Shown piece after piece: positions 38,701 to 64,000 of a DNA stretch of 64,000 nt; the first letter of the stretch is position 1; every line of letters starts with the position of its first letter. This stretch comes from Takakia lepidozioides (taxonomy: Eukaryota > Plantae > Bryophyta). The position numbers and the translations under genes are program-made. The notes beneath the pieces were generated by a model, which made no database searches, had not been told where the DNA came from, and saw only the letters and a program-made list of their open reading frames with translations. The stretch covers positions 53,816,001 through 53,880,000 of the forward strand of contig CM060733.1 in the NCBI GenBank assembly GCA_030704615.1. The letters run 5' to 3'.

Positions 38701-39857
38701 AGGAATTCGATCCATAGCCACCCCTCACCATCCCTATCTTATCTTGGGTTGCATCAACCACATTTGTGTGGATCTCGGGTAGACCTCTCTCTGACCTCCA
38801 GCTCGACCCCAAGGAATGGGGATGGGCCTTTGGTCGCTCCCCATCCTCGCTTCTCACCTACACCCCAAAAAAAGCATACAAGGCACTTAACAATCCGCCT
38901 GCCCTCTCCTCCAAGTGGGGAGGCAAATGGAGCCACTTCAGATTCTCCAACGAAAACTGGCTAGTAATTTGGTCGTCTATCTGGCTGAAAATAAGACCCG
39001 CCAAGATCTTAGCATTTCTCTGGCAAGTAGCGAACAGAGCCCTAAAAGTAGGCGAGTGGTTGCAATTTCACGAAGCCCTGTTATGCTCATGCTGCTCCTC
39101 GAGCATCATAGAAACCCACGAACAGTGCCTCTTAACTTGTACCGCACCAGCGAAGATATGGCCCATGGTCAAGGTCTTCTACAGGCACTGGAGTCTTTCC
39201 GCCATCGGCCCTTTAGACCTACTACTCAACTACAACAGGAATGCAAGGGCGCGATCCTTTCCATGTCTAGTTTTTGAAACTCTCCGAGCCTCCACCCTAT
39301 GGCACTTGTGGCATGCTAGACACAGAAAGACCTCCAGTAATGAAACGATAAGTACCTCGGCTTTGCTGGCAATGGTGTATAAAGATCTTATTACGGAATA
39401 AAAAAAAGTATGGGCAAAATGTGTTGCAGATTGTCACAAGGCCCCCAAGCAGGCGCCCACAATCCATGCCACCTTCAGATCGACGTGGGCCTGCCATGGC
39501 ATCATTTGTCAAAGCGACGAGCACGCTGGAGAGACCTCAGAGCTCCATTCCACGGCCTCGCCTGAATTTAAGAGAGACGTAAAATGGAAACACGTCAAGC
39601 ACCCCACCACCACTTCCAGGCTTAACTTTCGCTAAATACGCTTCAGTTCTAGATTAGCTCCTCGGTAATCTCAGATGCATGTTGCGCTGATTGGAAGTCT
39701 CTCAGGATAAGGCTAGGCTAATTTTTGAGTTCTCTCTCTTGGTGCAGGATAAGGTTCACTCCTCACTGACTACGGTGTGTAACCCTCATGGTGTATCAGG
39801 GGTTTTATTTTTTTCCCCACAATTTTTGGAATAAATGATCTATATTGAAAAAAAAAA
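32800..39857 (+). mobile_element. Near full-length decayed L1-clade LINE retrotransposon
   Basis: ORF1 remnants (KGRGFFSIMF; CCHC knuckle CFGYGKHGHIKKNCP at about 33874). ORF2: AP endonuclease (SWNIRRL, FLQEHK, IYAPN, LAGDFN, RLDRFY), RT (CPGMDG, NYRPITLLN, LDFEKTFDRVEW, YVDD), GGLG, zf-RVT; then AATAAA and an A-tail at 39849-39857. Many stops and frameshifts; internal deletion near 36405 where the SDH motif is missing. 5' boundary approximate. Confidence 0.93.
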
Positions 39858-40631: not shown

Positions 40632-43600
40632 CCCTTAAGTGCCAAAACTCATTTCACCCTTTGGTGGAAAAACTTGACCCTCGCCCACAAAACCTTTTTT
40701 ATCTGGAGATTCTCTGTGTCCCTGTAAAACTAACCATTGGAATTACTTCCCACCTACCCCACCTCCTACCACAAAGTCAAAATCCAACTGCCAGATCTGC
40801 AGATTATAAGGTTTACAGTGGGGACAAAATCTCCACTAAGAAATAGGTGCCAAAAAAGCAGTTTTTTGCTCATATGTGGGCAATTTTTCTTTTTTTTCGT
40901 TTGACAGTCTCAAGAATGTTGTTCCATACCTGATAACACACATCCTCAGAAATTTTCAGTTTTTTCTGAAATGTTCTCAAGTGGGCTCCTTTATAGTGAC
41001 AACTTGGGGGGTCAAATTATGCCATTTTCTTTGGGCAGGCCAAAATCTCGCTTCCAAATATTCTGTAAAACATTTCAGCCATTCAATTCCTAACCCTCCG
41101 GTTGAAGTGTCAAGGGCATCCAAATGAGGTCCTAAAAACAAATTGAGACCAATCAGTAACTGCCATCACATCTTTAGGTTCCCTGCCCAAGACTTCAAAT
41201 GGCACACCTATGTGTCCTATGTGTCCTATGTGTCCTGCAGGCCTAGGACATTTGGAGCCATAGCCCACAAGGGTAGAAGGTTTTGGAGCTCCTCTAGCTA
41301 ACCGGCCCTGCTTTCTTGGGGGCCCACTCCACCCTCAACCCTATGAAACCCCCGCCCTAGGTTCGGCCCACCCCTAATAATGAGGGGTTTGGACTTTCCC
41401 ACCCCTCATAAGTATGGCATACCCGTCACCGGAAATGCATCCCCGGTTTTGCACATGAAGGTGATTTCACCGGAAATACATCCCGTATTTTTGACTTTAT
41501 CGGAATGTTTACAAACCACATAGCATATTCCAAACACTTTTGAAATTCAATCTGCAGGAGCCCCTGAATTTGTCTAAGTCCCATGTGTACTTGTGTCAAA
41601 AAGTTAGCCCCCTGCAATGCACGCACACCACCCTACCACCCTGTCATCCCCTACAATACATATTATCCATAAACAAAAATATAGCAATAGAGTGTCACCA
41701 TTGTCAAGAGTTCCAAGGTGTAGTCACTATCAAAATCGAGACATCAAATGCAACCTAGCGATGTCTACGGTGAACTCGAAGAAAACACTTGCCATGGCAC
41801 ATAAAGCGACTGTCACAATAGCCACAAAATGTGCGACACCTCTGGCTGCAAACAATGCATCTGCATCGTAAATGAGAACGCTCAAGCATATGAAGAGCCG
41901 GCGCATGTGAAGGTACCACCACAGATGTAGATGTGTAGCAATGTTGCCATCCCCTTGTCAGAGCCTCTGCAATCAACAATTGGAAGTGGGCATGAGTGAA
42001 TGCCTTTCTGCCCAAAGAAGCCATGTGTCTGCGGTACAGTAGCCACATATTCACCATGGATGTATCAAGGACGAAAAATCAGAGGCGGTGCCACCACTTG
42101 TGGGTGCGTGTTTGACAAGAGTATGATCCCCTCAATTGGTCCTGTACAGCAACCCCACGCATGTTGGCTTGATATTCCACATGAATGGGAGATGATTGCA
42201 CCTCCACCCGTGCACCAACAGTCCCATCCCACCGACAAACGGTTGCTGGTTCAGCAGCACTAGGGACAGAATTAGCACTAGTAGATAGCACAAAAAACCC
42301 ATTTATGGTCCCACCATAACAAGGCACAAATCTTGCGAGACCTATGCATCTTGTACCACACATCTCCACGATTCCCTCAAGTGTGCCCAAGCAAAGACAC
42401 AGGGACGCCAATACGATCAGTCCTGCAGGTGCCAATGGCATATGTTCCCAACTTCAACAACTCCCATAAAAGCATAGGAGATGTAAAGAAGTTATCAAAC
42501 ACCACTGTGTGACCCACATGGAAGAGCCCTTCCATCGTCTTCTTCACCACATCAAACCGCTGCCCGGCTACCCCTTTCCACTTACAATTCAGCCCAGCAC
42601 TGCCATCTTCAGCTCCCAAATACATTGAAATGTTGTACACAAACTTGGATTCAACATCAGCCACGCACCATACCTTGATACCCCATTTAGTAGGCTTTTT
42701 TTTCATGTACTGCCAGAAGGAATAGTACTTACCTGAGTAGGCAATCATCATCTCATCAACAGTAAGGTATTTTCTAGGGTTATACAAAGTACGACTGATG
42801 CGCCCCAAGTCCTCTACAAACCAGCGACACTTACCCAATCTATCATACTCAGGGCTGGACTTGTCTTGACACAATGTGGAATTGTCAACCAAATGAAGAC
42901 ATCGCATGATGGACTCAAAACCTATGTCTCTTCATCACCTTGCAGATGTGTGAGCAAGAAAAAAATTGGGAAGAAGGACACCAATACGATCCTATACTTG
43001 GCTGTTTTTCAGACCTATGTACAAGCATATGCCAATGAATACCTTCAACTCAGAAACAACCAATGGAATCCAGCCCTCCCCCCCCCCCCCCCCCCCTCGT
43101 TCTAACAGTAATTGGGTCAAGCACATAACCTGCATATCTGTTGGTCTGACAACATATACGGACCAGGTTGACTTGTGGAAAGAAAAGGTCAAACCAAGAG
43201 AGCAAGTGTCCCCTAAAAGAGCTAGGCAAAGTTGGGCCAGCAAAAGGACCAACAAATTTACCTAGGGTTCCAACCAAGTGGTCACTACTTGACTGCCAAT
43301 TGCTATCTTTGAAGAGATCCCTAAATTCCAAAGTATCCAAATCCAACCCGTCATCATAGATACCCAACTCATCCAACAGATCCTGAGGACTTTCCCCAGC
43401 CCAATTCCAATTGTCTTCATCATCCGTGTCCCCCTCATAAGCTGTAGGCTCATCACCATAGTCCTCGTCATCAGAAAATTCAGGGATGTCAATGACATCC
43501 ATCAAGTGTTGTGAGCACATATCCCCTCTACCATTGAGGACCAATTTTCCCCTTTTGTCACTTGTGCCATCCCCAAACAAAGTACTAGTGGGCAGCCTAA

Positions 43601-44102
43601 GCAAATCACATTGCGCAATGTGAAGTGCCCTCAAACCAAGTAATGGACCAAAGTCAGCCTCCACCATTTTATCTTGTGAAGGCACCTCAATCCAGGTCTG
43701 AACAATCTCACCATAACACCAATCTGATGTGGGATCCACCTATTCGTGAGACTCACCACAAACCACATGTTGCTTGACTCTAACAGGTACAGCAGGCCTG
43801 ATCGGACGTATTTCAGATCTACCAATAGATGTGCTAGTCAGATCTACTCTCTTTCGCAAATGAGAGTACACCCCAAGGTCAAACAAATTGCAAGAATCCT
43901 CCACATCAACACATTTTCCTTTTTCTGGACTAGAATTGGAATGAACACCTCTCCCTCTTAACTGCAAACTGGTCCTAAGAGGGGATGACAAGGCACTAGT
44001 ACCTTCAAAGTCAAGAGGCTGATTGTCAATCAAACCAGCAGGCTCAGAAGGTATAAGACCAGTTGGGGGCTGTTTCAAGGTCAAGTTCTGGCCATGGGAC
44101 AT
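40632..44102 (-). mobile_element. piggyBac-like (DDE_Tnp_1_7 / PGBD) transposon, decayed; transposase about 41755-43740
   Basis: LTVDEMMIAY, QYMKKKPTKWGIKVW, VVFDNFFTS, YQANMRGVAVQDQ (third Asp altered), KWWHRL, and a C-terminal Cys-rich domain CIVC...CGYC...CHGKCF; several frameshifts. Candidate end TTAA|CCCTT at 40628-40636; other end not found. Confidence 0.85.
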
Positions 44103-45151: not shown

Positions 45152-46392
45152 CAGTGTTGTGCGGGTAAATCATTTACCCGGATTTACCCGGCGGGTAAAT
45201 CAGGGTAAGGGTATGATTTACCCTGATTGGCCCATTTCATTTACCCTTATCCTTACCCTTCAGACGGGTAAATAATCTGAGATACCCTTACCCTTACCCG
45301 TGTGATGGGTAAATAGTTTCCATATACCCTTTACCCGCGGGTAAATATATATTTTTGGAGGATAAATAGCAAAAGGGTAAATGAAAAACTACAGCCTTTC
45401 TTGGCAATTGGAGGGCCCATCTGGTGTGATCAGCATTTGGATTCGGGAAAAATGGAACAGGTAGTTATAAAGAATGCCCATGATTCAGCTGACTGCTCCC
45501 TTCACTTCGTGGCCAATGAACCTGTCTTGCTCACTGCTGCCACTGACGATTCCGTAAAGGTTGTTTTCGAGTTCTTGCCTTCCTATCTCAATTCAATGGC
45601 AGTTATTCAAGGCTTCTAGTTTGAAGTACCTATGCCCACCCTCCATCTCCTTTTCTCTGGTCAGAATTAACTTTCATGTTTTCTCTTCATTTGTTTGCTA
45701 CTTGGTCATAAAATTATATATAAGATAGGTCAGAGGTACATGAAGAGTTAATCTGATAGGAAAGTTGCTTCAAGAAGAAGGTCGATCTCGAGAGTGATCA
45801 GCAGAAACTGGTGGAGCAGACTAGGCTTGATGGCTTGCTTCATATATTGATGGTAGTACAGATTACAACTAGCTGCACTAACATATACTCATACCAGCTC
45901 CGTTTCGGCTTTTCTGCCGCCCCTCTCCATCCTACGCAGACTGAGCACAGGGTTTCTTGGGAGATGGGGATCTATTTTTCTTCGCTTTCCCTCTCGCATG
46001 TGGGATTTGTGGCAAGCATATGGTGTTAAACATGCAAGATGTAGCACAAGCTGGTCATTTTCCCTGATTTCTATCCCTAGTCAACATATGATACGATGAG
46101 CCTACTAAACCAATAAATAGACAATTGATTACCTTAATTAGTTAGTTATATTTTTTGAGTTGAGCATAACAAACTAAAAAAATTATATATCCTTCTATAT
46201 ATCCTTTATTTACCCAGCGGGTATAAAAAGGGTAAATCATATATCCTTACCCGGTATTTATCCTTACTTGGTCGAAAATATTGGCCTTTACCCTTTACCC
46301 GTAGGATAAATAAATGGACATATAAATAATTTTACCTTTACCCGGAGGATAAATAAACCTCTGATTTTTATTTACCCTATCCGGAGGATAAA
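45152..46392. mobile_element. hAT-MITE (CAGTGTTGTGCGGGTA end, TTACCC subterminal repeats) carrying host-gene sequence
   Basis: Left flank GTTCGAAC; dense TTACCC/GGGTAA at 45160-45385 and 46200-46390; right TIR absent (Helentron fragment follows). Confidence 0.6.
45392..45940 (+). pseudogene. Captured fragment of a UTP21/WDR36-like WD40 gene
   Basis: QPFLAIGG/SGVISIW...VIKNAHDSADCSLHFVANEPVLLTAATDDSVK followed by a GT donor, and later LRFGFSAAPL, resemble the plant UTP21 sequence as I recall it; frameshifted. Confidence 0.7.
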
Positions 46393-46457: not shown

Positions 46458-47393
46458 CTATATTGTAGAATGATGATATTTAACAACATGGTTTGGTAGT
46501 TTGAAAGCTATATATATAGGTTTGTGATCTGTCCAATATGCCTCTGTAACTCCTGATATACATTGTTGGTTAGGCGTATTTGTCCAAATATGGTCCAACT
46601 GTTAATCATATATTGTAGTAGTTTTCATGAATTGAAGTGTCATATTGAACATCCTCATGAATTGTAGCAATTGTTTTGACATTGTTGAATCATTTTGTAA
46701 TATATTTATATTGAAATCCCCTATAATAATGGTGGGACAGAAAAGTGGTATTTTATAAAGAATTGTTTGTAGTTGAGACAAAAATATAGATATCGAAAGT
46801 GATGGAGGTTTGTAAATAGTAACTACATGAATAGCTCTTCTTGTATTTTTATTGAAAGTGGCCATTATATATTCAGCACCAGAGAATGAAAACACTTCAT
46901 GAGATACTAAGGACATTGTTGTGTCATATAACATCATGGTGCCATGACTACCATGTACAACGATATATGAATATTTTGTGGAATCCATAAACAGATTTAT
47001 ATTGGAATTAGGTTTGAAGTGCGTTTCACTAAAACATAAAATATGAGCCGTTTGTAAGTTGTGGTCTGCAAAAACATCTTCTTTATGTGATAACAATGAT
47101 CTTGTATTCAAGTGTTGTATAATTACATGTGATTGTTTGTATATGTGCAAAGTTGGAACGAGTAACTGCCATCGTGCGCTTGTATGTAGACGGTGCATCT
47201 CCTCTGCAACCCCATTGTCAACAAGAAGATTTTTCAATTGCAAATTCGCTAAGAGGTATAAGTTTTCTTTGTTACGTATGCGTGACAAAGTTGTATAACT
47301 TAAACCATGTTTATATACCCTTGTAGGATCGAATGCTAGATAGTCCAAAGTTAAGCTTTGAGAACGATGGATTGTTCGAGCGGCTGCTAATTG
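46458..47393 (-). mobile_element. Helentron-type rolling-circle element fragment: Pif1 helicase C-terminus fused to an AP-like endonuclease
   Basis: LAAARTIHRSQSLTLD...HGLSYTTLSRIR (Pif1 motifs V-VI), then HLNTRSL, CFSETH, TIYKPP, IIGDFN, QLDHIW, WTDHKPIY; one internal stop at 46602-46604. Confidence 0.8.
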
Positions 47394-47394
47394 A

Positions 47395-47710
47395 AACTCG
47401 CTGACAAAAGCTTGGCAAACCCAAATTCAATATGCATTCCACGCTGCACCCTTCTTCCTACCAGATATCAAAAAACTCGACAAAAAATCATTCATCTTAC
47501 CAAACGCGTATGCGGTTTACCAGTCAACACCCCCAATGCCTTAACGCAACTCCCAACCGATAGCTATGGAATTGGCTCAAGCCCATTAATTATTTCATAC
47601 GCCCGCACATGAGGTACACAGTTGAAAGAAACGCTAAATGACCCTGGGTGCCTTGGTATCATCTATCAGGGGCTCCTCAGATTCTTTGCCCAAAAGTACA
47701 ACGGTCTTCA
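47395..47710 (+). mobile_element. Non-LTR retrotransposon fragment (post-RT region, RTEX-like)
   Basis: KRVCGLPVNTPNALTQLP...YGIG...LNDPGCLGIIYQGL with stops. Confidence 0.5.
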
Positions 47711-48153
47711 CTCATTGTCATCCTTACACCCTCCCTCTCAAAACTTCATGGCGGCGAAGCCTTGCTGAAACTTAGAGCTACCATTTTAAAGAGCTTGAGA
47801 GGGAGGAAGAGATATGAGAAGGAGCGTTGGATTTTGCATTCTCGGCGCTCTGCATTAGTGTCTTCCATCAGCATCGGCATCAGCATCAGCAGTTTGTTTG
47901 ATTGTTTGTTAGATTCAGCAGTTTGGTTGATTGTTTGTTAGGTTCAGCTGTGTGGTGCGAATTCTCTAGCATTCAACAGGGCGATCTAGAGAGCTGGTGC
48001 TGTTGCTTTGGTAGTGCTTTGCTGGTACTTTGCTATGATTTGATTGGTGCGAATGCTCAAGAACCATGGCAGGACCAAACTCAAGGTATGCAATCTGCCT
48101 CAGATTGTCCCTTCGTATCTCCCCACAACTGATTGCATTATGATTATTTGTCA

Positions 48154-51100
48154 GGGGAGGTCTCCCGTGCTACTCAGGGGACCTCTCCCGTGCTAAATCC
48201 CACTGTTACCCTCATGGGAGGACTGTTTTGGTTATACTCGTGGTAGGTTAATGTCACGGGAGACCTCCCGTGATATTTAATACGTAGTGTCGAAGAGCGT
48301 CAAAGAGTGTATATTGGACAGGGAAAGAGGTCATTCGGCAAAGAGTAAGTCACTACCGTTTCACTGACCTATTATTTTTAGTTTGAAAAGGAGTATGGAA
48401 TCAGGCACTGCACACGCTAAGGGTCGGTCAAGGTGTCAGCCAAGGCGTTGGCCAAGGTGTCATTACCTAGAAGATGAAGAGTTGATGTCCGATATCCATA
48501 AAATATTGGAGGGGGACGGCAAGAACACCGATAGCAAAGTAAATGATGCCCCCCCAGAGTACATACCAGCATATTCACTAGAATACATCCCTGCAGAGGA
48601 CACGTATATACCGGCAGATTCACCAGTATACACCCCTGCAGAGGACACGTACATACCAGCAGATTCACCAGTTTACACCCTTGTAGAGCACACGTACACA
48701 CCAGTGTTGAGCGGGTATTGAATTTTTATTTACCCTCAGGGTAAGGATATCCTGAATTTTGAGAAAAGATTTACCCGTCGGGTCAGGGTATTATTATTTT
48801 TCAAATGGAAAGTAAGGGTCGGTTCCGGGTAATGCACATTTGTAGAACAAGCCGGGTCAAGGTATAACTGGGTACTTTCAAAATCCAACCTGAGGGTAAG
48901 GTTGTTTAACGGGACCAGATAATTTGGTATTACCCACCAAATAAGTAGAAGTTTAGGTAGGGTAAGGGTAGGGTAAATGGCAATTTCCCTAAGGATTTCA
49001 GATGAATTGGCAATATAACCAATATAAACCAATGAGATTCAAATAAGAAGAAATTAAAATTGAATATAGTTCAAAATAACTTGAGCATAATAAATCAATG
49101 GTAAGAAACTAAGTTTCAATCCCAAGAGTATAAAAACAAAATATAGGTACATCAATATACACGTGCAACGCACTAAAGCAGCCTAGAAAACCGCCATAAT
49201 ACCTATTTGCTTTGGGATTTGCGATTCGTCCTTGAGATACATTTAATGGCAATGGAATGACCTCGGCACAAGAACATCGGTAGCAAGCCCATTACCTGGA
49301 TTCCATTACCCGCCAAGAAAAACATTACCCGCCATAAAGGTCGGTAAATGCTGATGATTTACCCTTCATCCGGGTCCGGGTCCGGGGGAAACATAAATGA
49401 TACCCTTCATAATTAGGGTCCGGGTCCGGGTAAACAAAACCTGCCGGTCCGGGCATATATGGGTAACCTTACTTGGATATACCCGCCGGGTATACCCGGG
49501 TAAATTGTATACCCGCTCAACACTGAAACACACCTAGAGTGTACATACCAGCAAAGTCCAGACCAAACCACATCTCAGAACTTCACACCCCAAAAGAGCA
49601 AGCCATATGAATAGTAATCTGATGGAATTCGCGATTCGGCTGGGATTCACGGTCCCTACGGACGAAGACAACTTGGAGATTGAAATCCTCTCAAGAGCTG
49701 GGAATATCTTGACGGTATTCTCTACCATAATGCCCAGGAGAGACAGCAATTGGAGGAACAGCGAATCCAATCGGAACAGAAGCAGTTGGAGGACACGAAA
49801 AAAAAAACAAAACAAAACAAAACCTAAAGAAGGAAATGGAGATATGACGAAGAAGAAGGGGGAACAAAACGACGGAAGACCATCGATATCATGAATAGCC
49901 AAGAAAAGAGGCGTCTGAAGACTAACGAGATTTTCGACATGGATGAGGCCAAAAGAGTCGAGAAGACTCTCTTTAAGGAATACCAGGATATATTCCCGTT
50001 TGGATTTGACTTTGTCCAGGAAGTAGACGTCAACCGCTATTTTCTGGCCCCACAGCATATGGTAGATCGACCACTCTGTGAGAAGCACAAGTTGGAGATA
50101 AAATCATGACTAGTTGCGTACGACCTAATTGACTCAAAAATGCCTGTTTACTTGTTGCCACGACACGAGACAGACACCATGAAGGTGTGGAGCAGGAAGC
50201 CCGTCAATGAGCGCGAATTGCAGAAGACAACATTTTTTATTATCCGAGGCCAACACACATTGGTGGCAGCGGGCAGGTCTGGGGGAGGTCTCCCGTGTTA
50301 CCCCACCTTTCTGAAATTCTACTTACTGGTTGACTACGTAATTGTTCACTGTCCATTGTCCATTGTCTTTTCTGCTAATGCTAATCTACTGAAGTGTGAT
50401 GATTGCAGGAGCTTCTAGAGGATCCGACATTGAATAATGATGTGCTGATAAAATCTCTACGTTCATGGCCTGCTAAGATAGTGTGCTCGACGGATGAGTT
50501 GCGACTGGTGACTATCTCGAAGGTTCTGAACAAGCCCAACAAGGAGAATCTTTACGAACCGTCTTTCTATGAGAAGGCCCGTCACTGCCGAAAATATTAC
50601 CATTACAAGGAGAGGCCCCAAAAGTATGATGAGCATCGACGGGCCAAGACACAGAAGTGGAAGGTGAGTGTGACCACAGGAGGTCTCCCATCCTTTCTTC
50701 CCATTGTTCTATCAATGCAACGATGCAATGGATGTCTAGATTATATTTGATCTTTGGACTCAATCTCATTGTGTACTAGTCACAGGCGGCGATGGTCTCA
50801 TTTCGCCCCAAGATGATTGTCCAAACATTCTGGATTCCTTCTCTTCAGTTGAACAGAAGGAATTTCAGATCTTTCCACCATCTTCCGGGAACCAAATGAT
50901 CCCATCGTCATCCGAGATTGTGTTCACATCGAAGCTATAAGTTCGAATAGATTGATGGGTGTGGGAGAGCTTGATTAGTGTCGAAGAGTTGTCATGAAAG
51001 GTGCAAGATGCGAACAACCTTGGAGAGGCTGAAATGAGCAACCCCGCAAGGTTATTTTAAAATGATAGGTTGAGTGGCAAATGAGGAAGATTTGAGGACG

Positions 51101-52891
51101 AGAGATCTCCCGTCCTTTTGAATTGACTGAAGTTGAAAGTAGGGCTAGATTAGCACAGGAGACCTCCCGTCATAGATAGCTACACTTGCTAGTATGTGCA
51201 GGATTTCATTGTCGGAGCTCAAACCATTCTGGATGTGAAAAGTGACAAGGAGGCAATGCCACTTGTGTTCACCTCTGATCGGACCTGGAATTACTAGACA
51301 AAAGTGTTTTCAAGATGGGAGAAGTGCGAGCTCATTGATCCCAAAGGGAACATCCCCCAGAAGGAGCAGCCAGCACTCAAAAAATCTAGCGTGGCTCGAC
51401 TGCAGGGGTTGGACGACAGCCAGATTGCAAAGGTTGTCATCATGTTACTTAAGAACAAAGTGTTGATGCGTCATCCATACACTGGGCCTGACACCGATGT
51501 TCTGAGTCTAGAGGATTATTGCAAGTACAAGAAGTTGAGGAGGCACATTATTGATGATATCATGGTCGGCTTTGGATTTAAGGAGCTGACGAAGGAACCG
51601 ACATCCATAAACAAAGGCTGAGTGGACGGCCATCAAGCATAAGTACAAAAGGAATTTTGAGGCTCCAGTAATTCATCTCCATTTCATTCTTCCGATGGCA
51701 GAGTCGGAGTGGGAAAGAGTGGACAAGGTTGTGCGGAGGTGCATCACATCCAAAGATTGATACATTCCAAGAGTGCTACATACAGAGGCGGAAGAATCGA
51801 AAAATCCTTTGGAAAGTCGGTACTACAATAATGAGATCCGATCATCGGCCATCGACCAAGTCGTTGATCTCTTCTGTGCGGAGGGATCTTCCGCTATCAA
51901 TGTGTACTGTGGGGGGGTGGTCACATACTCGCTTATGGTAAGCACGTACAAACTCAATTCCTAATTTGACTTTTGGTAAACCTCATTAGCTTTCTATTGA
52001 ACATAGGGACTGTAACAGATGATCTAGGGGAGATCTCCCATCCTCCATTGACGGGAGATCTCCCTTCCTAGCTTTGACGGGAGACCTCCCATCCTCCATT
52101 TGATAATTCATATCTCTGTTTTGAGATGAACATCGCGTAAGACTAGACTGGCACGACACAATACTGATACCCAGATGATTAGAAGCATTTATTAGAGGAC
52201 TTTCCCGAGTGCATCCGTATTCGTACAAAGTGATACATAAGCCTTTAGGTAACACACTGGCGATGTTATCTAAGATCTTGGGTATCACTTTGTACACTGG
52301 CAATGTGTTATAAGATCTTATGGTTTACTTGATAAGTATGGCCAGGCATAATCTTGAAGTAATTCCCAGATTGTGAGAGCTCTTAGATATTGCTTCAGAT
52401 GATGGGTTGAAAGTGTGCGTAGGAATTCACCATATTTTTTAAGCTTTTTACCGTCATCCTTCGACGGGAGACCTCCCGTACTCCTTTTACCATTATCATC
52501 TGTTTTTTTTTCAGATTGTCAAGTTACTAGTATTAGGATCATTCGAACCTTCTCCCTTCCTCTCTTTGACGGGAGACCTCCCGTCATCCTCTTGGCCATT
52601 CTTATCTGTGTTTTAAGATAAAACTCGTGCAAGACTAGTCTGGCACGACACACTATTGATACCCAGGTGAATAGAAACATTCATTACAGGACTTTTCTGA
52701 GTGCATCTGAATACCTACAGAGTGTCACAGAAGACTTTAGATTACGCATTGGCGAGTTTGTGAGGGCATCTACCTACATATATGAGAGGGGATAGTTTAC
52801 AAGGATGTAACGTGGCTCGATTTATCCTGATTATCGATTACATCATATGACGGGAGACCTCCCGTTCTCCTTCGACGGGAGGCCTCCCGTC
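48154..52891. repeat. Dispersed 16-bp palindrome ACGGGAG-NN-CTCCCGT, about 14 copies
   Basis: Copies near 48154, 48177, 48255, 50282, 50675, 51097, 51154, 52027, 52050, 52076, 52463, 52568, 52849 and 52874. Confidence 0.9.
48702..49525. mobile_element. Complete hAT-type MITE inserted in an exon
   Basis: Perfect 17-bp TIR CAGTGTTGAGCGGGTAT / ATACCCGCTCAACACTG; flanks GTACACAC / AAACACAC; the interrupted Y-I-P-A repeat resumes after it. Confidence 0.88.
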
Positions 52892-53869
52892 CTTCTTTGA
52901 CCGTTCCCATCTGTGTCTTGGGACTATCCAGTTACTGAATGTTAATAACCGGCTTATGTTTGAACAATCAGGAATCAAAATGTAGGGTGTTGGAAGTAAC
53001 GCACCCTAGTCGTATGTTATCAACAAGAGCCTCTGCTGAGAAATCCTTCAAAATTCTCGCATTGCTGAGTACAAAGGGTCCCGCGGAAGAGGCCCATCGT
53101 TCTGACAGAAATCAAGGACGCCAGGAGAGGACACAGATGTCCCGCGACACCAACTCTCGAAGAGAATTACTAACGCAACCAGATCCAGCCAGAAATAGGC
53201 CTGTGCACTTGGAGGATGGTGAAGATGACAGTGAGACTGAATCCAACGGCGTGGAGCAGAGCCCAATGTTTCATTGGCGGTTTGCAAAAGGAAGATGGAT
53301 ATTTCGCAGGCGATGAGTGGGGAGAGATCCCTTCAGCCTCAGGTGCTTCCACTGCTCTTTACTTATTTTTCTAGCTAAAATATGTTCCATTCCAGTTTGG
53401 TACCTAGAAAAGATGGATATTTTTCAACTCTAGCTTGGGTTGAACTTTTTAAAATTTGGTTCGCTGCATGTGATTGCCGAACCAGGAACATAGACTAGTC
53501 TGAGACATTGGGAGGGAGATCCTACCGTTATTGTTTAGTTTCTTTCATATGATTTGGTTGCTTGGGCCTATCATGTAGAGAACAGACTCAGGGCCTCAAA
53601 TTACAAGGAATCCCCTACCTTCCACCATTAAAGGTTACTTTAGTTCAACTGAGGTGTGGAATGCAGTACATACTAGCATGAGCACCCAGCTGATACATGG
53701 AAATCAACATATACTAGTGCCCAGGTTGAATAGGCTAAGAGTCCTCAGTTCATACAAACTAGTGTGATAAGTATGGTTGGGGTGCTTGCTGGAAGAATTC
53801 TAGGTTGTCATTGCAACAAGGCAAGGATGTATGTGATTTGTGCAGAGGCATGGATATAGCTGAAGAAGT

Positions 53870-54510
53870 AGGGATAGAGTGTTGGTCCAGATTCATCCAA
53901 GAGGGCCAGATATCAAGCACAAGATTACCTATGATTGTCTGTGGACGGATAGCTACAAAAAACGTGCAGCGGCACAATGGATAAAATCAGGCACTGCTAC
54001 TGAAGGCATCATCTTCAGCACATTTCACCCTGTTTTTCCCTCTTATCAGGATCGGCCCTAATTTCCATGTTGAATTCTGCAAGTGAGCTGGTTGAGTGAA
54101 TATAGTTTGGAGTGACTTTGACACGATACTGCCAATGTGACAATAGGAAAGTATCAGAAAACAAGTAATAGAGATGAGGAGAAGCTGTGGAATGAATACT
54201 TTTCTGACCCCAGTCAATGATGGGACAACCAAGGCAGAAAGGTGAATGCCTGTTACCTTTCAAAGAGTAGCAGACGCAATTCAGCCTAGGAACTAATGTG
54301 ATAAGCTGAGTTAGGTGTTTCCTAGAATAAATCTAGGCTGTCCTTGTCAGCTACTAGCAGCAAGGCAAGGATGAATGCATGATTTGTGCAGAGGCATGGG
54401 TAGTTGAAGGAACAAAGATAGAGTGTGGGTCCAAACTCATCCAAGAGGGCCAGATTTCAAGCACAAGATTACTTATGATTCCCTGTGGATCAATAGCTAC
54501 AAGAAACTTG
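53870..54510 (+). pseudogene. Fragments of a PDF-motif (OSB-like organellar ssDNA-binding) gene
   Basis: HPRGPDIKHKITYDCLWTDS, EKLWNEYFSDPSQ*WDNQGRK|gt, GPDFKHKIT; stops present. Confidence 0.65.
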
Positions 54511-56308
54511 CATGGGTACATAGTCTATTCCATAGGACTCAATTTGCCACTGAGTCTTGCATTATGAGGATCACAATTGTTTGGCAGCTTACCTAGGCTT
54601 TGACCCTTAGGCAATCCCCAGAGCAGTAGTAGCTTTGGGCTGCTTTTTTACTTTGGTTTTTTCATTTTGTCCCATAATCTCTTTGAGCTTTCTGCAGATG
54701 TAATAAAATACCATTTTGTTTCATTTTCATTTCATTTTGTTTCTAGGCATGTCTTTCATCGTTTTCGCATTTCTAATGACATGATTAGTTCTCTTGTATG
54801 GCATTACATGAGTATGTATTAGTCGGCTCACTACAAACACCAAAACTTCAAAGCATGAACCACTATGAATGATTGTTCAAGTAATTTCAAGCATTTCATT
54901 TAAAGTAGTAAAGCAGTAGTTGCACCGACTTTCGTAGTCGCAGTTGCCACTAGGCATGTAGCACTGCAAGTTATGTGGTCGACTACCACGTTGCGTCTCA
55001 GGCCCGTGGCCATGTGGCAGCAGTGCTGCTCATCGCGGCGCCGCGACGTCGTCGTCCACATCCGCGTCCATGTGTCACTGCGGTCCGGTGAGTCATTCCA
55101 CTCATGCGGAGGGAAAAGTCAAAGTCAGCCCAAAAGGTCAGACACACAGGCGGCTGGCCTGGTTACGCCACGTGGTGACTCAACAATAATCGCAATAATC
55201 ACTAAGCAGTCGTTGACGCGTCTGCATCTGTTACCACTCCAATCATTGGATGTCCGATCCAACTGCCATGTTTGTTGTAACTAGTCGTTTGTAACTTCCA
55301 GTCGATCCCAATTTTTTTATTTTTACGATTGAAAATGATCCCTAGTGGTAAATGACACGAATGCTTCTAGTGCCAGTCGACACTTTCAATGTACGCAGGA
55401 CTTGTAAGAAAGATTTCATTTCATCCTTGGAAAGTACATACGGTGCAACAGACATTACCATTTTTCCAGGGTCACGTGGTGTGGGGCGGTTCCACTACAA
55501 CAGATCCTGGCTTTTAGATCTACCACATTTGCCTAGTCGTGGCATATATGTCTGCAAAATGCGAAGGGCAGTCCTGAATGCCAATGGAGACCACCAGAAG
55601 ACATATATACCATTGTGTGCCTCCGCCACGTCAGGATCTGCGGTCAAACACATTTGACCAGATAGATTGAGATGGTAGATACGACTACAAGTACAGTAGG
55701 ATGACATGGGCATCGCAATGTATGACTACTAGTATTCACGACTACACGTGGCGATTGATGGTGCCCAAGGAATGTTTATGTGGAAAATGCAAAGATAAAT
55801 GGATGAAATAGAACGAGGATGTGACTGCAAATGACGACGTGTCTACATATCATTGCTCGCGTGGTTGAGATATTGTGGTGTATTGGATGTAAGTGCATCT
55901 AACGGCTACAAATTATACGACTTCGAGGGTGACGTCCACTTACTGGTGATTTATTTTAAATTGTAAGCGGTTTCAACAAGTTCACTAGTAACTCCACAAT
56001 TATATTTTAAGTTCATGTAATTTGAAATGTATATACTAGTAATGAAATAGAATATACAGTCGTTTTAACCACTCATTTAATGACTATATATATATATATA
56101 TATATATTCAAATATATAAAGCTAAAAATACCTTCACATAATAACATGGAATATATAATTATTTTATATATTTTTAGGGTGCAAAACGTTCAAAAAATTC
56201 AAAAGTTGTCTCGAATGTAGGGTTGTTAGGTCGCAGAGTGCAGGCTTGGGACTTAGTGTTTTTTGGGGTCTGCGTCTTCTTAGTGCCAAAGCATCGTGAT
56301 AGAGGCCG

Positions 56309-57860
56309 TGTTTCAATCTCTACCTGCTCGAATGCACCATGGCCGCTCTCACAGACCTATCCGACATTACCTGACTATAGACACAAACAACATACACAAG
56401 AGGTCCTAGTGGGTTCATGGTCAGTCGAATCCTCCATGGGTCAAGATACAAGGTCGACGACAATGTGGTGAGGGCGCCTTCTTCTTCAACCTATTTCAGC
56501 CTGTTTTGCCCTCTCATCAGACTCGGCTTTGCATTTGCAGCACGAAGCAAAGCTGGCACGAGTTTTTGAAAGATCCTTCGCGATGGTGGGACAACCGCAA
56601 TCGGAAGGTGTGACTTTTTCTTAATGTACGATGTGAAGAAGATTGTCCATCCTGCAAATGTGGGCTCTCGGCTCCTGTTAGTACCATGATTTGGTATTCT
56701 TCCTGATGTTTACGAGGTTCTTGGGAGAGTCAACTTTGTCTTAGTAGGTCGTGTTTCAATCTCTGCCCGCTCAGTTGCATCGTGGTGGTTCTCACGGACC
56801 AATCCGACATTACCTTACTACGAACACAAGCAGCACACACAAGAGGTCCTCTTGGTTTCATGGTCAGTCAAATCCTCCATGGGTCATGACACAAGGTCGA
56901 GGACAATGTGGTGAGGGCACCTTCTTCTTCGACCTATTTCAGCCTGTTTTGCCCTCTCATCAGACTCGGCCCTGCATTTGCAGCACGGAGCAGAGTTGGC
57001 ATGAGTTTCTGAAAGATCCTTCACGATGGTGGGACAACCGCAATCGGAAGGTGTGGCTTTTTCTTAATGTACAATGTGAAGAAGATTGTCCATCCTGCAA
57101 ATGTGGGCTCACGGCTCTTGTTAGTACCATGATTTGGTATTCTTCCTGATGTTTACAAGATTCTTGGGAGAGTCAGCTTTGTCTTAGCAGGTTGTGTTTC
57201 AATCCCTGCCCGCTTAGTTGCACCGTGGTGGTTCTCACAAACCAATCTGACATTACCTGACTACGCACACAAGCAACACACACAAGAGGTCCTCTTGGTT
57301 TCATGGTCAGTCAAATCCTCCATGGGTCATGACACAAGGTCGAGGACAATGTGGTGAGGGCACCTTCTTCTTCGACCTATTTCAGCCTGTTTTGCCCTCT
57401 CATTAGACTCGGCCCTGAATTTGCAGCACAGAGCAAAGCTAGCATGAGTTTTTTTAAGATCTTTCACGATGGTGCGATAACCGCAATCGCAAGGTGTGGC
57501 TTTTTCTTAATGTACGATGTGAAGAAGTTTGTCCATCTTGCAAATGTGGGTTGTTGGCTCCCGGTAGTACCATGATTTGGTATTCTTCCTGAAGTTTATA
57601 CGTTCTTGGGAGAGTCAGCTTGGTCTTAGCAGGCCGTGTTTCAATCTCAGCCTACTCAGCTGCACCGTGGTGGTTCTCACAGATCAATCCGACAGTACCT
57701 GACTACAGACACAAGCAACACACATAAGAGATTCTTTGGGTTGATGGTCGGTCAAATCCTGCATGGGTCATGACACAAGGTCAAGGTCAACAATGTGGTG
57801 AGGGCACCTTCTTCTTCAACCTCTTTCTGCCTGTTTTACCCTCTCATCAGCTTGGCCCTA
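56309..57860 (+). repeat. Tandem repeat, about 442-bp unit, about 3.5 copies; the three full units carry a WWDNR-type exon end
   Basis: Units start GTGTTTCAATC at about 56309, 56751, 57194 and 57636; encode QSWHEFLKDPSRWWDNRNRK followed by a GT donor (degenerate in copy 3). Confidence 0.9.
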
Positions 57861-58536
57861 AGATACATATTGAATTCTGTAAGTTAGCTCGATGGGTGGA
57901 TCTGTGGTGGTTAGGAGTGACTTTGACAAGTTACTGACGATGTGGCAGCAGGAAAGTATCCAAAAACAGATCTAACATAGATGAGGAGAAGCTCGTTGGT
58001 GGATCTATGGTGGTTTTGGAGTGATTTGGACATGTTACTGTTTGTAGGGTTAGGGCGTCAGGGGGGCTGCTATTTCATGAGCCATGAGCCATGAGCGGCA
58101 TGAGCCATGAGCAGAGTCGTAAGTGTCGAAAAAAACATGAGCAGGATTATTTTCCGGAAATGAGTGTCCGCGGGAATAGGGTTCGGGGTGTCATGGTCAT
58201 AGGGGGAGAAGGACCTCCCGATGAAGGAGGTTCGGCAATGTTTTTTAGAATTACATATTGAAAGGCAATGTTTTGCGAATGGTAGGGTGGTACTGCTATG
58301 TACAATGGGGGCCCATTTCAGCCTACCAGCCACTTGCAAAATCCACCCACACTCCCAATCCCAAACGAAACGAGGAATGATGCATTTCTGGGAACGATGG
58401 ATACAGAATAGAACAAAAAGAGGGCACAATGAGGTTTTTATTGATCCACATGAATTGCATTTGAAGCACGTCTACTGTGCTGATTGTGCAAACAAATCTT
58501 TAGCCCTGTGCCTTCTGAATACAAGTCACGTTGTCA

Positions 58537-61146
58537 ATGGGACTTCGACTGCTCTGAAAACTAGCTCATGAGTCATCGGGCTCCTCCAGTGGAACACAGA
58601 CATTGGAAGACTACGTGACACGTTTCAGATGCGCGTACAAAGACAACCTCTTCGCCAGGGAGCTGCAGACAGCAAGAAGGAGCGTGGAGTTCACACATCA
58701 GGAGGGAGCGGGGAAAGCTGCAATGCGAATTGTTTACAGGTGAAGCCCAGCTGCCCTTATATGCGAAGCTTGGTTATGAGGTTTGTCTGGGAAATGTGGC
58801 ACCGCATTCGCATTTTATGATTTTGGTTGCACTCTGCGAATATGTTGGTCTCAACTTCTGCTCACGCATGCTGACTACCGTGCAGGTATATGAAATACGT
58901 GCTTCTTCAGACAGGGGCCCTGGCTCAAGAGCCCCCGTTCTTCATGGCTTGGACCGTGGCGGGCCCAAGCTATGTCTACACACCCGAGATGCAGAAACAA
59001 TGGCATGCCGCGCATCTCGTTGGATGCCCGTGGTACCTGGACATGTCTGGCGGAATTGTTGACGAGTCTGAGAAAGATCTGCACGCGAAAGCAGTAGAGA
59101 AGAGAAATGAAAGACGTGTCTCGGCCAGAGTCGGCAAAGGAAGCTGCTGCTCTGGAACAATCCAGAAAGGTAGCTGAGATGGCACAGAAGATGGTAGATG
59201 CAGCTGTGCAGACTCAACAAAAGGGGTCGAAGAAGAGGACTCACCAGCAAGGAGCAGCAGTTGTGACACCCAAGAAAACGAAGAAGCAGAAACAAAAAGA
59301 CCAGGAAGAGGGTGACGAAGAGGACTCCGATGGAGACTTTGCAACCAGCCCGCCCCCCGTAACGCAGCCGCAAAGAAGACACTCTTCAACCCCCCGGGGG
59401 GGGGGCACCCTTTCGAGCCGGTGGAAATTAAGAGGCCGAGAGTGGATCCCGATACAGTAGTCGAGTTTGTAAATGAGAGTTTCTTGGCGGCTTTGGATGG
59501 ACGGGCAGCCAAGTTGGCATACATCAAGACCATGGAGGGTCTGAAGGGCAGAGCACTGAAGAAGGCGGCTGCCGAAGAGCCTTCCGACACCCCTGGGTTT
59601 CTGAAGATGGTCTCGTTCTTTGAGAGGGTGTGTCCAGACAAGGATTGTAGGAGGGGTGGAAAAGCCACCGAGTTGTCTTGCGATATGATCATCTTGGATA
59701 TTTCGGACGAAGAGCCTGTGGAAGGACTGCAAGCTTTGCCATCTTGGAACAGGTACTCCGAGGACTTTTGGAAAAAAGGATTCGGGCTCGCCCGCATGGT
59801 GTTGGACGACAAAAGCTATGTGGTTGTCCTGGCGAGCAGAGGCAAAAACACTCAGACAAGAATTGCGAAGTGGACCCGCAAGAGCGCCGTCCCAATTCTG
59901 AAGAAGAAGTGGACGTGCATCAACACATTGGGCCTTTGGTCGGAAGGGAAGAAGGTAATTACGACATTGGCACTCGTCCTTTCATTTTGTTAGGTGTTTT
60001 GAAATGCGGTGCCGCATTCGATTTCTAATCGTTCCCCACTGTGTTTGCAGACGAAGCAGTTCGATGCATACTGCTTTGTGAAGGAGAACTCCACCTTTGC
60101 TTTCCGGAAGGATGGATTGTTGATTGACCCGAACTGCGACCCCATCGATTACGACGTCCTATTCAACAATGTTCCCACGGAACTTCTCCCTCATAGCCTC
60201 ACTTCAACGGAACCCCTGCGGTATTCACGGACTCGAAGCCCTGCCTTCATTCAGACAATTATGGAGACATGCACTGACCTGGAGGGCACAGTGCTCGACC
60301 TCATCTGTTGGACAGGTATGCAGAATCTTGTACTATGCTGTTCTGCAAATTCTCGTTATGCTTTAATTCACAACATCTGAAGGGCCATGTTATAATGTGT
60401 GGATGACATTGTAACAGGTGCCTCAATGTGGGCTGGGCGGTTTTCCGACCGGCACCTCTTTGCCTACGAGGAGGACATATCCGTTTGGGGATCCCATCTG
60501 GAAGGGCTTCAACGGAATGTGAAGGCTCCCATCAAAGCCAAAGATTCCTCGGATTCCTCGGCGTCGGAGGAAGAGACAGTGGACATTGATGCCGAGGAGA
60601 ACCCGGAATACGAGTGAGTGCAAACATTGTAAGTTTGCAAAGCCTTCTGGGTGATTTTTTATCAAACACATTTCCGGACTGTGGTTCTCATTGGTCTCGT
60701 GGGTGATTGTTATGTGCAGGATTCTAGGATCCGGGTCGAAACATGTAGGGCCTACACTTCCTGCCAGGAAGAATGTCCCGTTCTTTGCGAGGGCCGACTT
60801 CATGACGAGCCCGGTGAATGACTACTCCCTTCCTAGTTATGCAGCTAAACTTGCAAATACAGCGATTAGACGATGTGAGAATACCAGTAAAGTAGAGCAG
60901 ATTTTGGAGAGGGCTAGGGAGGACAGAAGGATAAGGAAAGAGTTGGCAGCAGCTGAGACAGGTAGACGGGTGCGAAAGTTCATATGTGATTCAGCAGATG
61001 AGAGCGATGCAGACAGGGAGGACGACGACCCAACGGAGGTGAGATGGTCGGTTCCGCAAGGGGAGGATGGGAATTTTGAGAGCCTGGCCAACGAGCAGTC
61101 CGCTGGAGATGACGGGGTGGAGGCGGAGCAGGACGGTCAAAGATAG
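58537..61146 (+). pseudogene. Spliced, frameshifted gene with a beta-class DNA N6A/N4C methyltransferase-like domain
   Basis: Phase-consistent introns 58740-58885, 59955-60050, 60316-60417, 60614-60719. SCDMIILDISD (DPPY position)...PSWN...ARMVLDDKSYVVVL...RSPAFIQTIMETCTDLEGTVLDLICWTG|ASMWAGRFSDRHLFAYEED. Early stop and two frameshifts upstream of the domain. Confidence 0.65.
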
Positions 61147-61312
61147 GACGACGATAGTGATGATTATCAAGATTAGTAGAATTTTAATGAACTCTCCGTA
61201 CATTTAAATTCTCTTCCAGAGTATATACAGGAAAATCTGCCCGTCCTTCATGTCCCCTCTCCCATGTGCTTCTCAACGACACCATCGTCCAAACCACGTC
61301 CCTCCCAAAATC

Positions 61313-62023
61313 GGAAATGCGGCACCGCATTTCCAAAACCGGGGCAAGAACAATTTTCCATTTCACGGTTTGGACATCAGAAACTGTTCGGCCAAACGGA
61401 AATGCGGTGCCACATTTCCGTTTTCGACATGGCAGTTTTGCCGATTGCCAGCTCCTTCCATGGAGGTAAATGGAAATGCCACCCTGCATGCGGAGGTCGA
61501 ACACATTATTTAAATGGCGGACATGGAAATGCGGTGCCGCATTTCCATTTTGGAGATGGACGTTTTTCCAACTCCAAACCCATTGACGGAACTGCGGCTT
61601 CGCATTCCATGATTCTGGACGGGAATGCGGCACCGCATTCCATTGTCCAATAAGAACTTTCGATTGCCAAACATGGAAATGCGGCGCCGCATTTCCAAAA
61701 CAGACATCGTTCATTGTCCAATTCTAGACCCTTCAATGGAAATGCGGCACCGCATTCCATTGTCCAATAAGAAAATTTGATGACGGACATGGAAATGCGG
61801 TGCCGCATTTCCAGAACGGACATGGACACATTGGCGATTGGACATGCTTGGACAATTCAAGGTCCAATATGGAAATGCGGTGCCGCATTTCCTATTCGAA
61901 GTATGGTAATGCCATGTCAAGAAATGAAATGCGGTACAATATATCCTTTACGACCACAACGGAGGAAAGGGAGCTGCCAGAAATCGCTGCATGGAGAAAA
62001 ATGAAATGCGGTCCTGAATTTCC
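61313..62023. repeat. Array of a 22-bp palindrome GGAAATGCGG-NN-CCGCATTTCC
   Basis: Good copies at 61313, 61398, 61525, 61621, 61675, 61738, 61791, 61871; degenerate copies at 61472, 61588, 61926, 62003; outliers at 58791, 60001, 63131. Confidence 0.92.
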
Positions 62024-62299
62024 GAGCTTCAGCATGTACATGTTTCCTTTTACTCATACATGGATTTCCTTCACCTCAGGACTCTGATATCGCTGACTCT
62101 GGTATATTCATGTGGACAGACACATTGTACAAATGAGACCACAAATTGTAAACAGTGGGCCAATTACGGCAGTTCTTGAACACATTGAAACAGAGCACAC
62201 AGAAATGAGGTACGATGGGTTGTTTTACTGATCGAACACGGTGTCTCACATTTAGCAACTCCAGACAAATCTAAGCCCTTCCTCCTTCTACATGGGCAT

Positions 62300-62866
62300 T
62301 ACCAAGTCGACGGAACTTCGATAGCCCTCAAAACAAGCTCATTACGGATGCGGCACCTGGAGGTAAATTGCAATGCGGTCGTTCTGGTGCCCTTGGTGGA
62401 GCTGACGACAATGTCATGCCCATCAATGATACCACCATCGTACATTGACAAGGTCACTGTGGGCCTCATATTCGTCTTCGCAACTCAGCCGAATGTCTCC
62501 ATACACTGGAAGAGCGGAGTGAACTCCACGAATATAGTTTTCCCCGGTGCCGTCCTCCCTGGTCCACTGGCAGCAGTTCCAGCGCCAAAGCGAGGCCGTG
62601 CGTGATTTGTCCGGCATCCCATTCCACCTTGGTATATCGAGGTCAACAATTTTCAGGACCCACGGACCGCATTGACCCTCGCCCTCACCTCGCTCAAAGC
62701 GGTAATAGCCCTCCAAATACTCCATTGCGCGCAAAGACTCCCGCTTGATTCCACAAGCGTCAGTGAAAACAGAGAGCCAGACAATGATGTCTCCTGATTC
62801 TGGTTTGAAAATAGCATAATCGTGGCCATGATAAGGGCAGTCAGCAGGATTTTGGCGGCACGACAT
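62300..62866 (-). pseudogene. Unknown protein, RWNCCQW family, copy 1 (frameshift near the 3' end)
   Basis: ORF 62423-62866 aligns with the plus-strand copy; the homology continues in another frame as DGGIIDGHDIVV. True start probably further upstream. Confidence 0.6.
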
Positions 62867-63254
62867 CCTTGAAAAAGATTAGCGGAGTACGCTCAATGAC
62901 AGAGGCGGCAGCGCGGTGGCTGGAAGAAGTTCAAGCAAACGCTGCAATTCCTCACTAACACTCCAGGGCACATTTGAATTTCCCCCTACAGGAACCTGCA
63001 CGGATGAAGATTGGCTGCTCCATGAATGTAGCCGCGTCAATTTCCTTCCCTGCCATGCAAACTATGGGCAGTAAGTGCCAGGTGGGCCTATAGCCACTCG
63101 AGACAACAAAGTCCATCCCCCCTTCGATGTAAATGCGGCGCCGAATTTCTATCCGGGGGATGGACTACGGTGGCAGATTTCAAACTATACCCCGTGGATG
63201 AGAAAGAGGTATCAGTTCATCCAGCGCTGGCGTGATGAACACGTTACATGATGA

Positions 63255-64000
63255 TTGGTGGGTACGTGGGACCGAGATGCTCCATTATTCGAGCCCGCAC
63301 TGCTCTTCCACTTCTCATCATTTCAAAAATCTAAGGGCTTCGTTGCTGTCCGCAAGGTCATTGTCATCGGCATCAAAGACGTCATCAGGTCCTTCTTTGC
63401 AAGGATGCCATGCTTCTGGAACTGGGACGACTGCCCTTATGGAGGCTTCGATTATGCAATGTATTCGGCCACATTGGGAGACATCGTTATCTAGTACACA
63501 GTTTACACAGAAGATACTGGTTCAAATGTGGAAACATTGTCCGCTTTTGAGAGTATCCCAGGCCACTACGCCTTCGAGCGGGGTGACGATCTTGGTCTGA
63601 GGAGTCCGTGGCTCCTACGCATCCTTGATTCCGATTTTCCCAGCTACGACGGGCACCCATGCAGAAGAATGCGCACTGCTATGATATTGCGGTGGAACTG
63701 CTGCCAGTGGACGTGGGTGGACTCTATCGGAGAGACGTATACTCCTGAAGGAGTGCGCTCCTCTTCTCCATTGTATGGGGACATTCGCATTGGTGTGGAT
63801 GACGAAAACGTGAAACTTTCCATATTCGATGGTGGTATGATTGAAGGGCACGCCATTGTGGTGAACATCAACAGGGGCGGTACAACGGCTGCAATCCAGT
63901 TTGACGTACAAGCCGAACGAATTTGTATGCATTATGACTTGCTCCTTCGCATTTGTCATTACCTGCGATTCCCACATGCATTGTCACGTAGCAGTTCATG
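63255..64000 (+). pseudogene. Unknown protein, RWNCCQW family, copy 2 (one TAG; runs off the window)
   Basis: FARMPCFWNWDDCPYGGFDYAMYSATLGDIVI*YTVYTE...FERGD...PWLLRILD...RTAMILRWNCCQWT...YGDIRI...DGGMIEGHAIVV in one frame. Confidence 0.6.

Follow-up and report, generated by a model that had tools for sequence, protein, structure and literature searches.

What are two decayed, gene-like loci doing side by side in a bryophyte genome, each with a palindrome of its own in its non-coding DNA? The question is raised by a 64,000-nucleotide stretch of Takakia lepidozioides DNA (GCA_030704615.1, CM060733.1, 53,816,001–53,880,000, forward strand), called the window below, in which the two loci, here named A and B, occupy 48–64 kb. 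The initial annotation described them as spliced ParB/DNA-methyltransferase-like genes and took them for pieces of mobile elements whose proteins recognise family-specific palindromes. Its observation is largely right; its interpretation is reasonable, partly supported, and not new in kind. Here, we propose that both loci are decayed cargo genes of a transposon-borne ParB/methylase-like type with cognate binding-site arrays, an explanation that we consider slightly more probable than not. The sequence directly shows palindromes that exceed chance and are specific to their loci, a spliced gene B whose lineage is of methylase descent and has lost DPPY, and a gene A that has become a pseudogene.

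Each locus has its own palindrome

The A-type palindrome, ACGGGAG-NN-CTCCCGT, matches the window 10 times at ≤1 mismatch, and all matches lie between 48153 and 52890. The B-type palindrome, GGAAATGCGG-NN-CCGCATTTCC, matches 7 times at ≤2 mismatches, all at 61313–61892. Dinucleotide shuffles gave 0 matches to either. A looser census was scored against the perfect 16-mer (A, 7-2-7) and the perfect 22-mer (B, 10-2-10). It counted 14 A-type sites within 48153–52890, upstream of gene A and in four introns (3 upstream of the putative start, 1 in each of two short introns, 2 at 51098–51170, and 7 in the large intron), and 11 B-type sites in a block that begins ~170 bp past the stop codon of gene B, with three outliers beyond this array. 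The sites are as follows.

48153..48271 (48153, 48176, and 48256): three A-type palindromes upstream of the putative gene A start (search and census)
50281..50296: degenerate A-type palindrome in the intron that follows the exon with the ParB-like motifs (census)
50676..50691: another degenerate A-type palindrome, one intron further on in gene A (census)
51098..51170: two A-type palindromes in non-coding DNA within gene A (search and census)
52026..52890: large intron with seven A-type palindromes, some of them the product of local duplication (search and census)
58790..58811: degenerate B-type palindrome in a gene B intron (census)
60000..60021: degenerate B-type palindrome inside the 96-bp gene B intron 59955–60050 (census)
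61313..62023: 11 B-type palindromes arrayed immediately 3' of gene B, a degenerate repeat with irregular spacing of 53–150 bp
63129..63150: isolated B-like palindrome with 3 mismatches, between two divergent paralogous genes (census)

The census found no crossover: there are 0 A sites at locus B, 0 B sites at locus A, and 0 sites in putative exons. Elsewhere in the window, sites surfaced only at the loosest threshold, at the shuffle rate. The palindromes are real, non-random, and locus-specific, and the earlier claim that each locus has its own palindrome with a 2-bp variable spacer, confined to its own non-coding DNA, was borne out.

Across ten copies in the B array, 18 of the 20 arm CpGs are preserved, against 1 of the 10 central CpGs (the centre reads CG, CA, or TG). 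This pattern of CpG retention suggests that the B arms are under constraint and that the 2-bp centre is free. For the A type, the possibility that the central 2 bp are mere CpG decay of a perfect palindrome was rejected: the commonest A form has AC, and duplication confounds the counts. Some A sites derive from a ~492-bp duplication and from 25–26-bp tandem units. If single-stranded, both palindromes would fold as hairpins; an Rfam search of 44–64 kb, palindromes included, gave no match. A metagenome scan with the core of the B palindrome returned 13 single matches without arrays, and these isolated matches were taken for chance.

Gene B and its methylase ancestry

The frame and splice sites of gene B were read from the sequence. 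It has four exons, which join in frame through GT–AG introns, and the description of both genes as spliced held up. Its parts are listed below, where P0006 is a metagenome relative introduced after the list.

58886..59400, plus strand: upstream part of gene B, with a conserved CPW[WY]LD...GIV stretch common to P0006, then a charged linker
59421..59954, plus strand: exon with methylase motifs IV–VI, in which the motif IV position reads DISD
60051..60315, plus strand: exon ending in the motif-I-like VLDLICWT
60418..60613, plus strand: exon with the rest of motif I and the following helix
60720..61146, plus strand: last exon, which encodes an acidic tail and closes with the stop codon (61144–61146)

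The upstream part contains two changes of coding frame, one at an A-rich run (~59100) and the other at a G10 run (~59398–59407), due either to frameshift mutations or to assembly errors in the homopolymers.

Single gene B exons gave 0 matches in Pfam, PHROGs, NCBIfam, and PDB sequences, and a word-index protein search with the stretch 59316–59990 found nothing. A HMMER/phmmer search of 1.84 billion cluster representatives with the exon 59421–59954 recovered six real relatives, all of them short unnamed fragments from ENA and Logan metagenomes; a further hit from a fluke (P0001) was discarded as a spurious low-complexity match. Three more relatives came from cluster members and from a profile word-index search of a 5.8-billion-protein collection, which contributed one new fragment. 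The nine relatives are all unnamed metagenome fragments at 26–34% identity, with no named plant orthologue among them, and such a record of nine unnamed fragments and nothing else is the pattern typical of repeat-masked transposon genes. They have in common the motifs aDL[IV]v-D-[ILVM]-P-x-G, PxWN, L-D-sG-V, and W-C-I-N-T-L-P. One of them, P0008, extends into the equivalent of the exon 60051–60315, and P0006 is the only one that extends upstream.

The ancestry of this lineage was analyzed at the level of profiles. The reference alignment comprised nine genuine N6_N4 methylases, namely E. coli YhdJ and eight phage enzymes; YhdJ and two of the phage enzymes were checked on PF01555 (E 1e-52 to 1e-64) and the other six by tblastn to YhdJ and by record annotation. 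In the hhalign comparison, the B-lineage alignment matched this reference with a probability of 92% (E 6.6e-7) over 59 columns. The alignment pairs aDLIV-DIP-G with DLI-TDPPY and L-DsG-V-l-S with RvLK-G. Its score of 49.9 compares with 12.5 for the reversed alignment and with a mean of 10.3 (standard deviation 2.1, maximum 17.1) for 100 column shuffles, that is, ~19 standard deviations above the shuffles. A second, colinear alignment, not significant alone, places SPAF-QTI-E-C-G-VLDL under QKP-aL-I-S-GD-VLDPF, which is motif I, at 37% identity. The motifs of the B lineage are found in the permuted order of the beta class, in which motifs IV–VIII precede a motif I near the C-terminus: motifs IV–VI align at template columns 23–90 and the motif I region at columns 201–230. 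P0008 by itself gave weak matches to PF01555 (E 0.06; 13.7 bits, against a Pfam cut-off of 26.7) and to PHROG 67, DNA methyltransferase (E 0.046), and every one of the 30 neighbours listed for it in the protein atlas is a PF01555 cluster. Because of the profile match, the shuffle controls, the motif-I alignment, the P0008 matches, and the atlas neighbours, we accept that the gene B lineage derives from a beta-class N6/N4 amino-methylase.

The catalytic residues tell a different part of the story. At motif IV, where genuine methylases have DPPY, the relatives read D-[ILVM]-P-x-G and the window copy reads DISD, and [DNS]PP[YFW] was found in no frame of either locus within plausible exons. Judged from these alignments, the catalytic tetrapeptide has been lost across the whole B lineage. 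Motif I (consensus LDPFxGSGTT; FxGxG) is partially matched, reading LDLICWTG in gene B and LDLTCNTGT in P0008. Since motif IV is degenerate and [DNS]PP[YFW] is absent at both loci, self-marking of the element by methylation, one of the roles put forward in the initial annotation, is unlikely for these copies. Because the catalytic motif was lost in the whole lineage, binding is likelier than marking, and the methylase fold may have been kept for the former. This shifts the focus to occupancy and chromatin state rather than to N6-methyladenine (6mA) or N4-methylcytosine (4mC).

Queries of the PDB sequences with the exons, the profiles A1 and A2, and P0006 were all without a match, and neither a metagenome scan with the protein alignment A3 nor a viral scan returned any related locus. 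Downstream of gene B lie two paralogous genes of unknown function in divergent orientation (62299–62866, minus strand; 63255–63998, plus strand), which are 43% identical over 124 amino acids and gave 0 Pfam or PDB matches. The B-like palindrome at 63129 sits between them, and a short fragment related to them is found at 58489–58585, just upstream of gene B. These paralogues and gene B may be parts of one element.

Gene A, the mobile-element context, and rival explanations

Gene A is less well preserved. Its parts, and the miniature inverted-repeat transposable element (MITE) nested within it, are listed below.

48383..48701, plus strand: possible 5' coding part of gene A, assigned to it by repeat continuity across the MITE
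48702..49525: nested hAT-like MITE, which splits the 5' part of gene A
49891..50276, plus strand: exon with ParB-like motifs recognised by eye (box ending IIRGQHTLVAAG) and an in-frame TGA at 50107–50109
50409..50665, plus strand: exon of 85 amino acids after the ParB-like box, with no relatives found
51701..51938, plus strand: exon with the motif-I-like VVDLFCAEGSS and an in-frame stop at 51758–51760

The putative 5' exon contains a 45-bp in-frame tandem repeat (48559–48704, 3.2 copies) encoding a Y/P/A/D-rich peptide. The MITE is 824 bp long, with 24-nt terminal inverted repeats (CAGTGTTGAGCGGGTA...) that are 92% complementary, an imperfect 8-bp target duplication (6/8 bases), and subterminal GGGTAA-type repeats; a single end related to it was noted at 45152–45213. 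Splicing from the donor past 50276 to the acceptor ahead of 50409 breaks the frame. Gene A is a pseudogene, because it has two in-frame stops, the MITE insertion, and this frame-breaking splice pair.

By eye, a ParB-like box (…FFIIRGQHTLVAAG) can be made out in gene A, with a motif-I-like stretch 3' of it, in which DLFCAEGSS partially matches LDPFxGSGTT. The arginine-rich box (GxxRxxA / DGxHR) was likewise read by eye, as RGQHTLVAAG in gene A and QKQWHAAHLVG in gene B; the arginine is missing in both. The ParB identity of genes A and B is a resemblance seen by eye only. No ParA-like domain was found among the open frames in general Pfam scans, in which no search was aimed at ParA. The gene A exons gave no Pfam, PHROGs, NCBIfam, or PDB match, and a 55-amino-acid exon gave no usable match in the protein atlas. 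The two genes with their methylase-like segments had been placed ~5 kb apart; this distance is correct for the gene bodies (53.3 to 58.5 kb), and the segments themselves are ~8 kb apart.

The window is plant nuclear DNA, because it includes two host genes: a phytochrome N-terminal photosensory module (28842–30920, minus strand, one 692-amino-acid open frame in a single exon) and a MATE transporter (5261–6820, minus strand). The surroundings of the two loci are rich in repeats, comprising satellites, the MITE, and remains of long interspersed nuclear elements (LINEs) and of a piggyBac element. The LINE remains (endonuclease, reverse transcriptase, and zf-RVT domains) lie at 34535–39398 on the plus strand and at 46605–47426 on the minus strand. 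Between the loci, a 443-bp tandem repeat at 56303–57859 (3.5 copies, 89% identity) has related pieces at 54009–54186, and a 230-bp segment is duplicated at 53757–54520. The piggyBac transposase pseudogene occupies 41758–43739 on the minus strand (PF13843, E 3e-33 for 42380–42931); its acidic N-terminus and Cys-rich C-terminus are in neighbouring frames, which indicates several frameshifts. It diverges from gene A over ~4.6 kb of nested repeats, upstream of the putative gene A start. No ends were found around the piggyBac gene that link it to gene A, and it looks like a separate neighbouring element. The statement that no transposase or element ends are visible was accurate for the part of the window that it described and for the ends, and is qualified by this pseudogene ~4.6 kb upstream of gene A.

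Here, we propose a scheme for the two loci based on these features. Loci A and B would be what is left of an accessory gene carried by transposons, one locus for each of two far-diverged lineages. Both proteins would have had an N-terminal DNA-binding part, ParB-like by eye, followed by a domain derived from a beta-class N6/N4 DNA-methylase minus its catalytic tetrapeptide. Each lineage would have had its own palindrome, a 16-mer (7-2-7) or a 22-mer (10-2-10), spread over the gene flanks and introns. The palindromes are most likely binding or loading sites for the protein of their own lineage, so that only the own element would be recognised, and the purpose may have been to shield or organise the chromatin of the element, not to methylate it. 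We infer the binding of palindrome by protein, the ParB identity, the status of both loci as transposon cargo, and the biological role from the arrangement of these features. In favour of the scheme, the sites are distributed over several distinct non-coding compartments (the upstream region and four introns of gene A; the 3' array and two introns of gene B), and the pairing of protein and motif is consistent within the window (n = 2). That the loci are pieces of mobile elements, as the initial annotation had it, fits the pseudogenisation, the nested MITE, and the few metagenome relatives.

Several results weigh against this scheme. No terminal inverted repeats or target duplications were found bounding locus A or locus B, and no transposase domain was found between the loci (53.7–58.5 kb) or after them, leaving them with no linked transposase; the window stops at 64000, and an element carrying gene B could run past that point. 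The exons of both genes and P0006 gave no ParB/Srx (PF02195) match in Pfam, PHROGs, NCBIfam, or PDB sequences, and one gene A exon gave no ParB match in the protein atlas, so that the proposed ParB likeness received no support from these queries, which were short single exons of decayed genes and had low power. The claim of amino-methylase-like segments in both genes stands for gene B at the family level and is not confirmed for gene A, in which the match covers 16 columns with a probability of 2% (E 0.023) and is not significant after 117 tests. A word-index search with the stretch 50403–50747 found no relatives of gene A, and no similarity between gene A and gene B was detectable by tblastx or by the B-lineage hidden Markov model run against the six frames of the window. 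The AlphaFold model of P0008 built with the alignment A2 had a predicted local distance difference test (pLDDT) score of 41 and was unusable, and its Foldseek matches were meaningless. Finally, because the arrays grew partly by local duplication, the independent sites are fewer than the counts, which are inflated to that extent.

The palindromes might instead act in cis for the transposon itself, for example as subterminal repeats bound by its transposase, like those of En/Spm or Mutator. They would then be close to the genes only through sharing an element with them, and the gene products would not be the binders. Subterminal inverted binding sites are a familiar feature of transposons; the B array is compact and sits at one end of the gene, like a subterminal repeat region, and the searches gave no support for a ParB identity of the proteins. 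The A sites, however, are spread over 4.7 kb, upstream and through the introns, rather than clustered at an end, neither a terminus nor a matching array at the opposite end was found, and the neighbouring loci carry different motifs. We regard this explanation as unlikely. It is also conceivable that the resemblance of the two loci is coincidental, gene A being outside the ParB/methylase-like family. It would then be a decayed gene of other descent, or not a gene at all, and a short palindromic tandem repeat would have spread into its introns. Its exon 51701–51938 ranks second of 117 plus-strand segments against the methylase profile, exactly at the motif I columns, and, as read by eye, motif I follows the ParB-like box, an order that fits the architecture of the family; moreover, the sites fall in five separate non-coding compartments and spare the exons. 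These points make an unrelated gene A quite improbable in our judgement, even though no A exon matches any family, structure, or protein significantly, chance alone would be expected to yield such a motif-I-like match in 117 segments, and part of the A sites arose from the ~492-bp duplication and 25-bp tandem units.

Gene B, for its part, could be a domesticated host gene, encoding a catalytically dead methylase-like DNA-binding factor, with the 3' array as its own regulatory or structural element and nothing mobile about it. Its four exons with an intact frame and canonical splice sites would suit a host gene, as would the absence of transposon ends and the position of both upstream frameshifts in homopolymer runs, where they could be assembly errors. 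Relatives that are few, divergent metagenome fragments lacking a named plant orthologue, and the repeat-rich surroundings, speak against a host gene, and we give this idea very little credence.

The preferred reading, that of two decayed transposon cargo genes with cognate sites, can be extended to a more general one. Land-plant transposons may carry fast-diversifying, dead methylase-derived clamps or readers, each lineage with its own parS-like palindrome, that load in flanks and introns, spread, and counteract silencing, amounting to a co-evolving, eukaryotic self-recognition of the ParB/parS type. In this full form, the proposal is speculative and, in our opinion, unlikely to be correct. 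If the proteins do bind private palindromes, plant transposons would be a toolbox of orthogonal protein–site pairs built from bacterial partition and modification parts, and, if true, this would show a mobile element telling self from non-self without small RNAs.

Comparison with known systems

In bacterial, plasmid, and phage ParB–parS systems, parS is 16 bp long, and each of the sopC repeats of the F plasmid holds a short inverted repeat. The loci described here resemble these systems in having short, repeated, system-specific palindromes, of 16 bp (7-2-7) in the case of locus A. They differ in that the window genes have no significant ParB match, and a partition function is implausible in a eukaryotic nucleus. 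VANC, the anti-silencing factor of VANDAL21 in Arabidopsis, recognises family-specific short motifs in its own non-coding DNA, with which it co-diversifies, and causes loss of methylation. The scheme proposed here would be similar in combining a transposon-encoded protein with family-specific short motifs, although the protein family is unrelated.

Among bryophyte proteins, the N4-cytosine methylases MpDN4MT1a/b of Marchantia sperm keep TSPPY and are active (bioRxiv 10.1101/2021.02.12.428880). They are similar to the predicted window proteins in their prokaryote-type amino-methylase fold and permuted motif order and in their occurrence in a bryophyte, whereas the window genes are without [DNS]PP[YFW]; the ParB domain has 0 mentions in that paper.

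The closest precedents are from algae. The giant transposon Sola1-1_Ec32 of Ectocarpus encodes an accessory protein with ParB-like and N4/N6 methylase domains (Genome Biol 2025, PMC12477816). Like its gene, those of the window would combine a domain derived from a prokaryote-type N6/N4 methylase with a spliced eukaryotic structure, a repeat context, and a proposed role in binding the own element. Unlike it, they are found without a linked transposase or termini and without the catalytic motif, and a ParB domain is not demonstrable in them; their host is a land plant, and their palindromes are in introns as well as flanks. A literature search, with most subscription journals outside its scope, found no paper on such genes in land-plant transposons. 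The window adds two divergent, decayed lineages rather than a clean element and is a modest example.

In the Plavaka transposons of the red alga Bostrychia, PAG3 has a ParB-like N-terminus joined to a 2-oxoglutarate (2OG) oxygenase, with tandem inverted-repeat arrays adjoining the gene, and the authors suggest that the PAG3 protein binds these repeats (bioRxiv 10.1101/2025.02.11.637652). The proposal that accessory proteins bind and modify their own element has already been made for red and brown algal transposons, and the idea is not new. The effector of PAG3 is an oxygenase, not methylase-like, and the Plavaka elements come with a defined DDE transposase and further accessory genes, in contrast to the loci of the window. 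The arrangement itself is shared: as in the algal accessory-gene reports, an inverted-repeat array directly adjoins an accessory-type gene.

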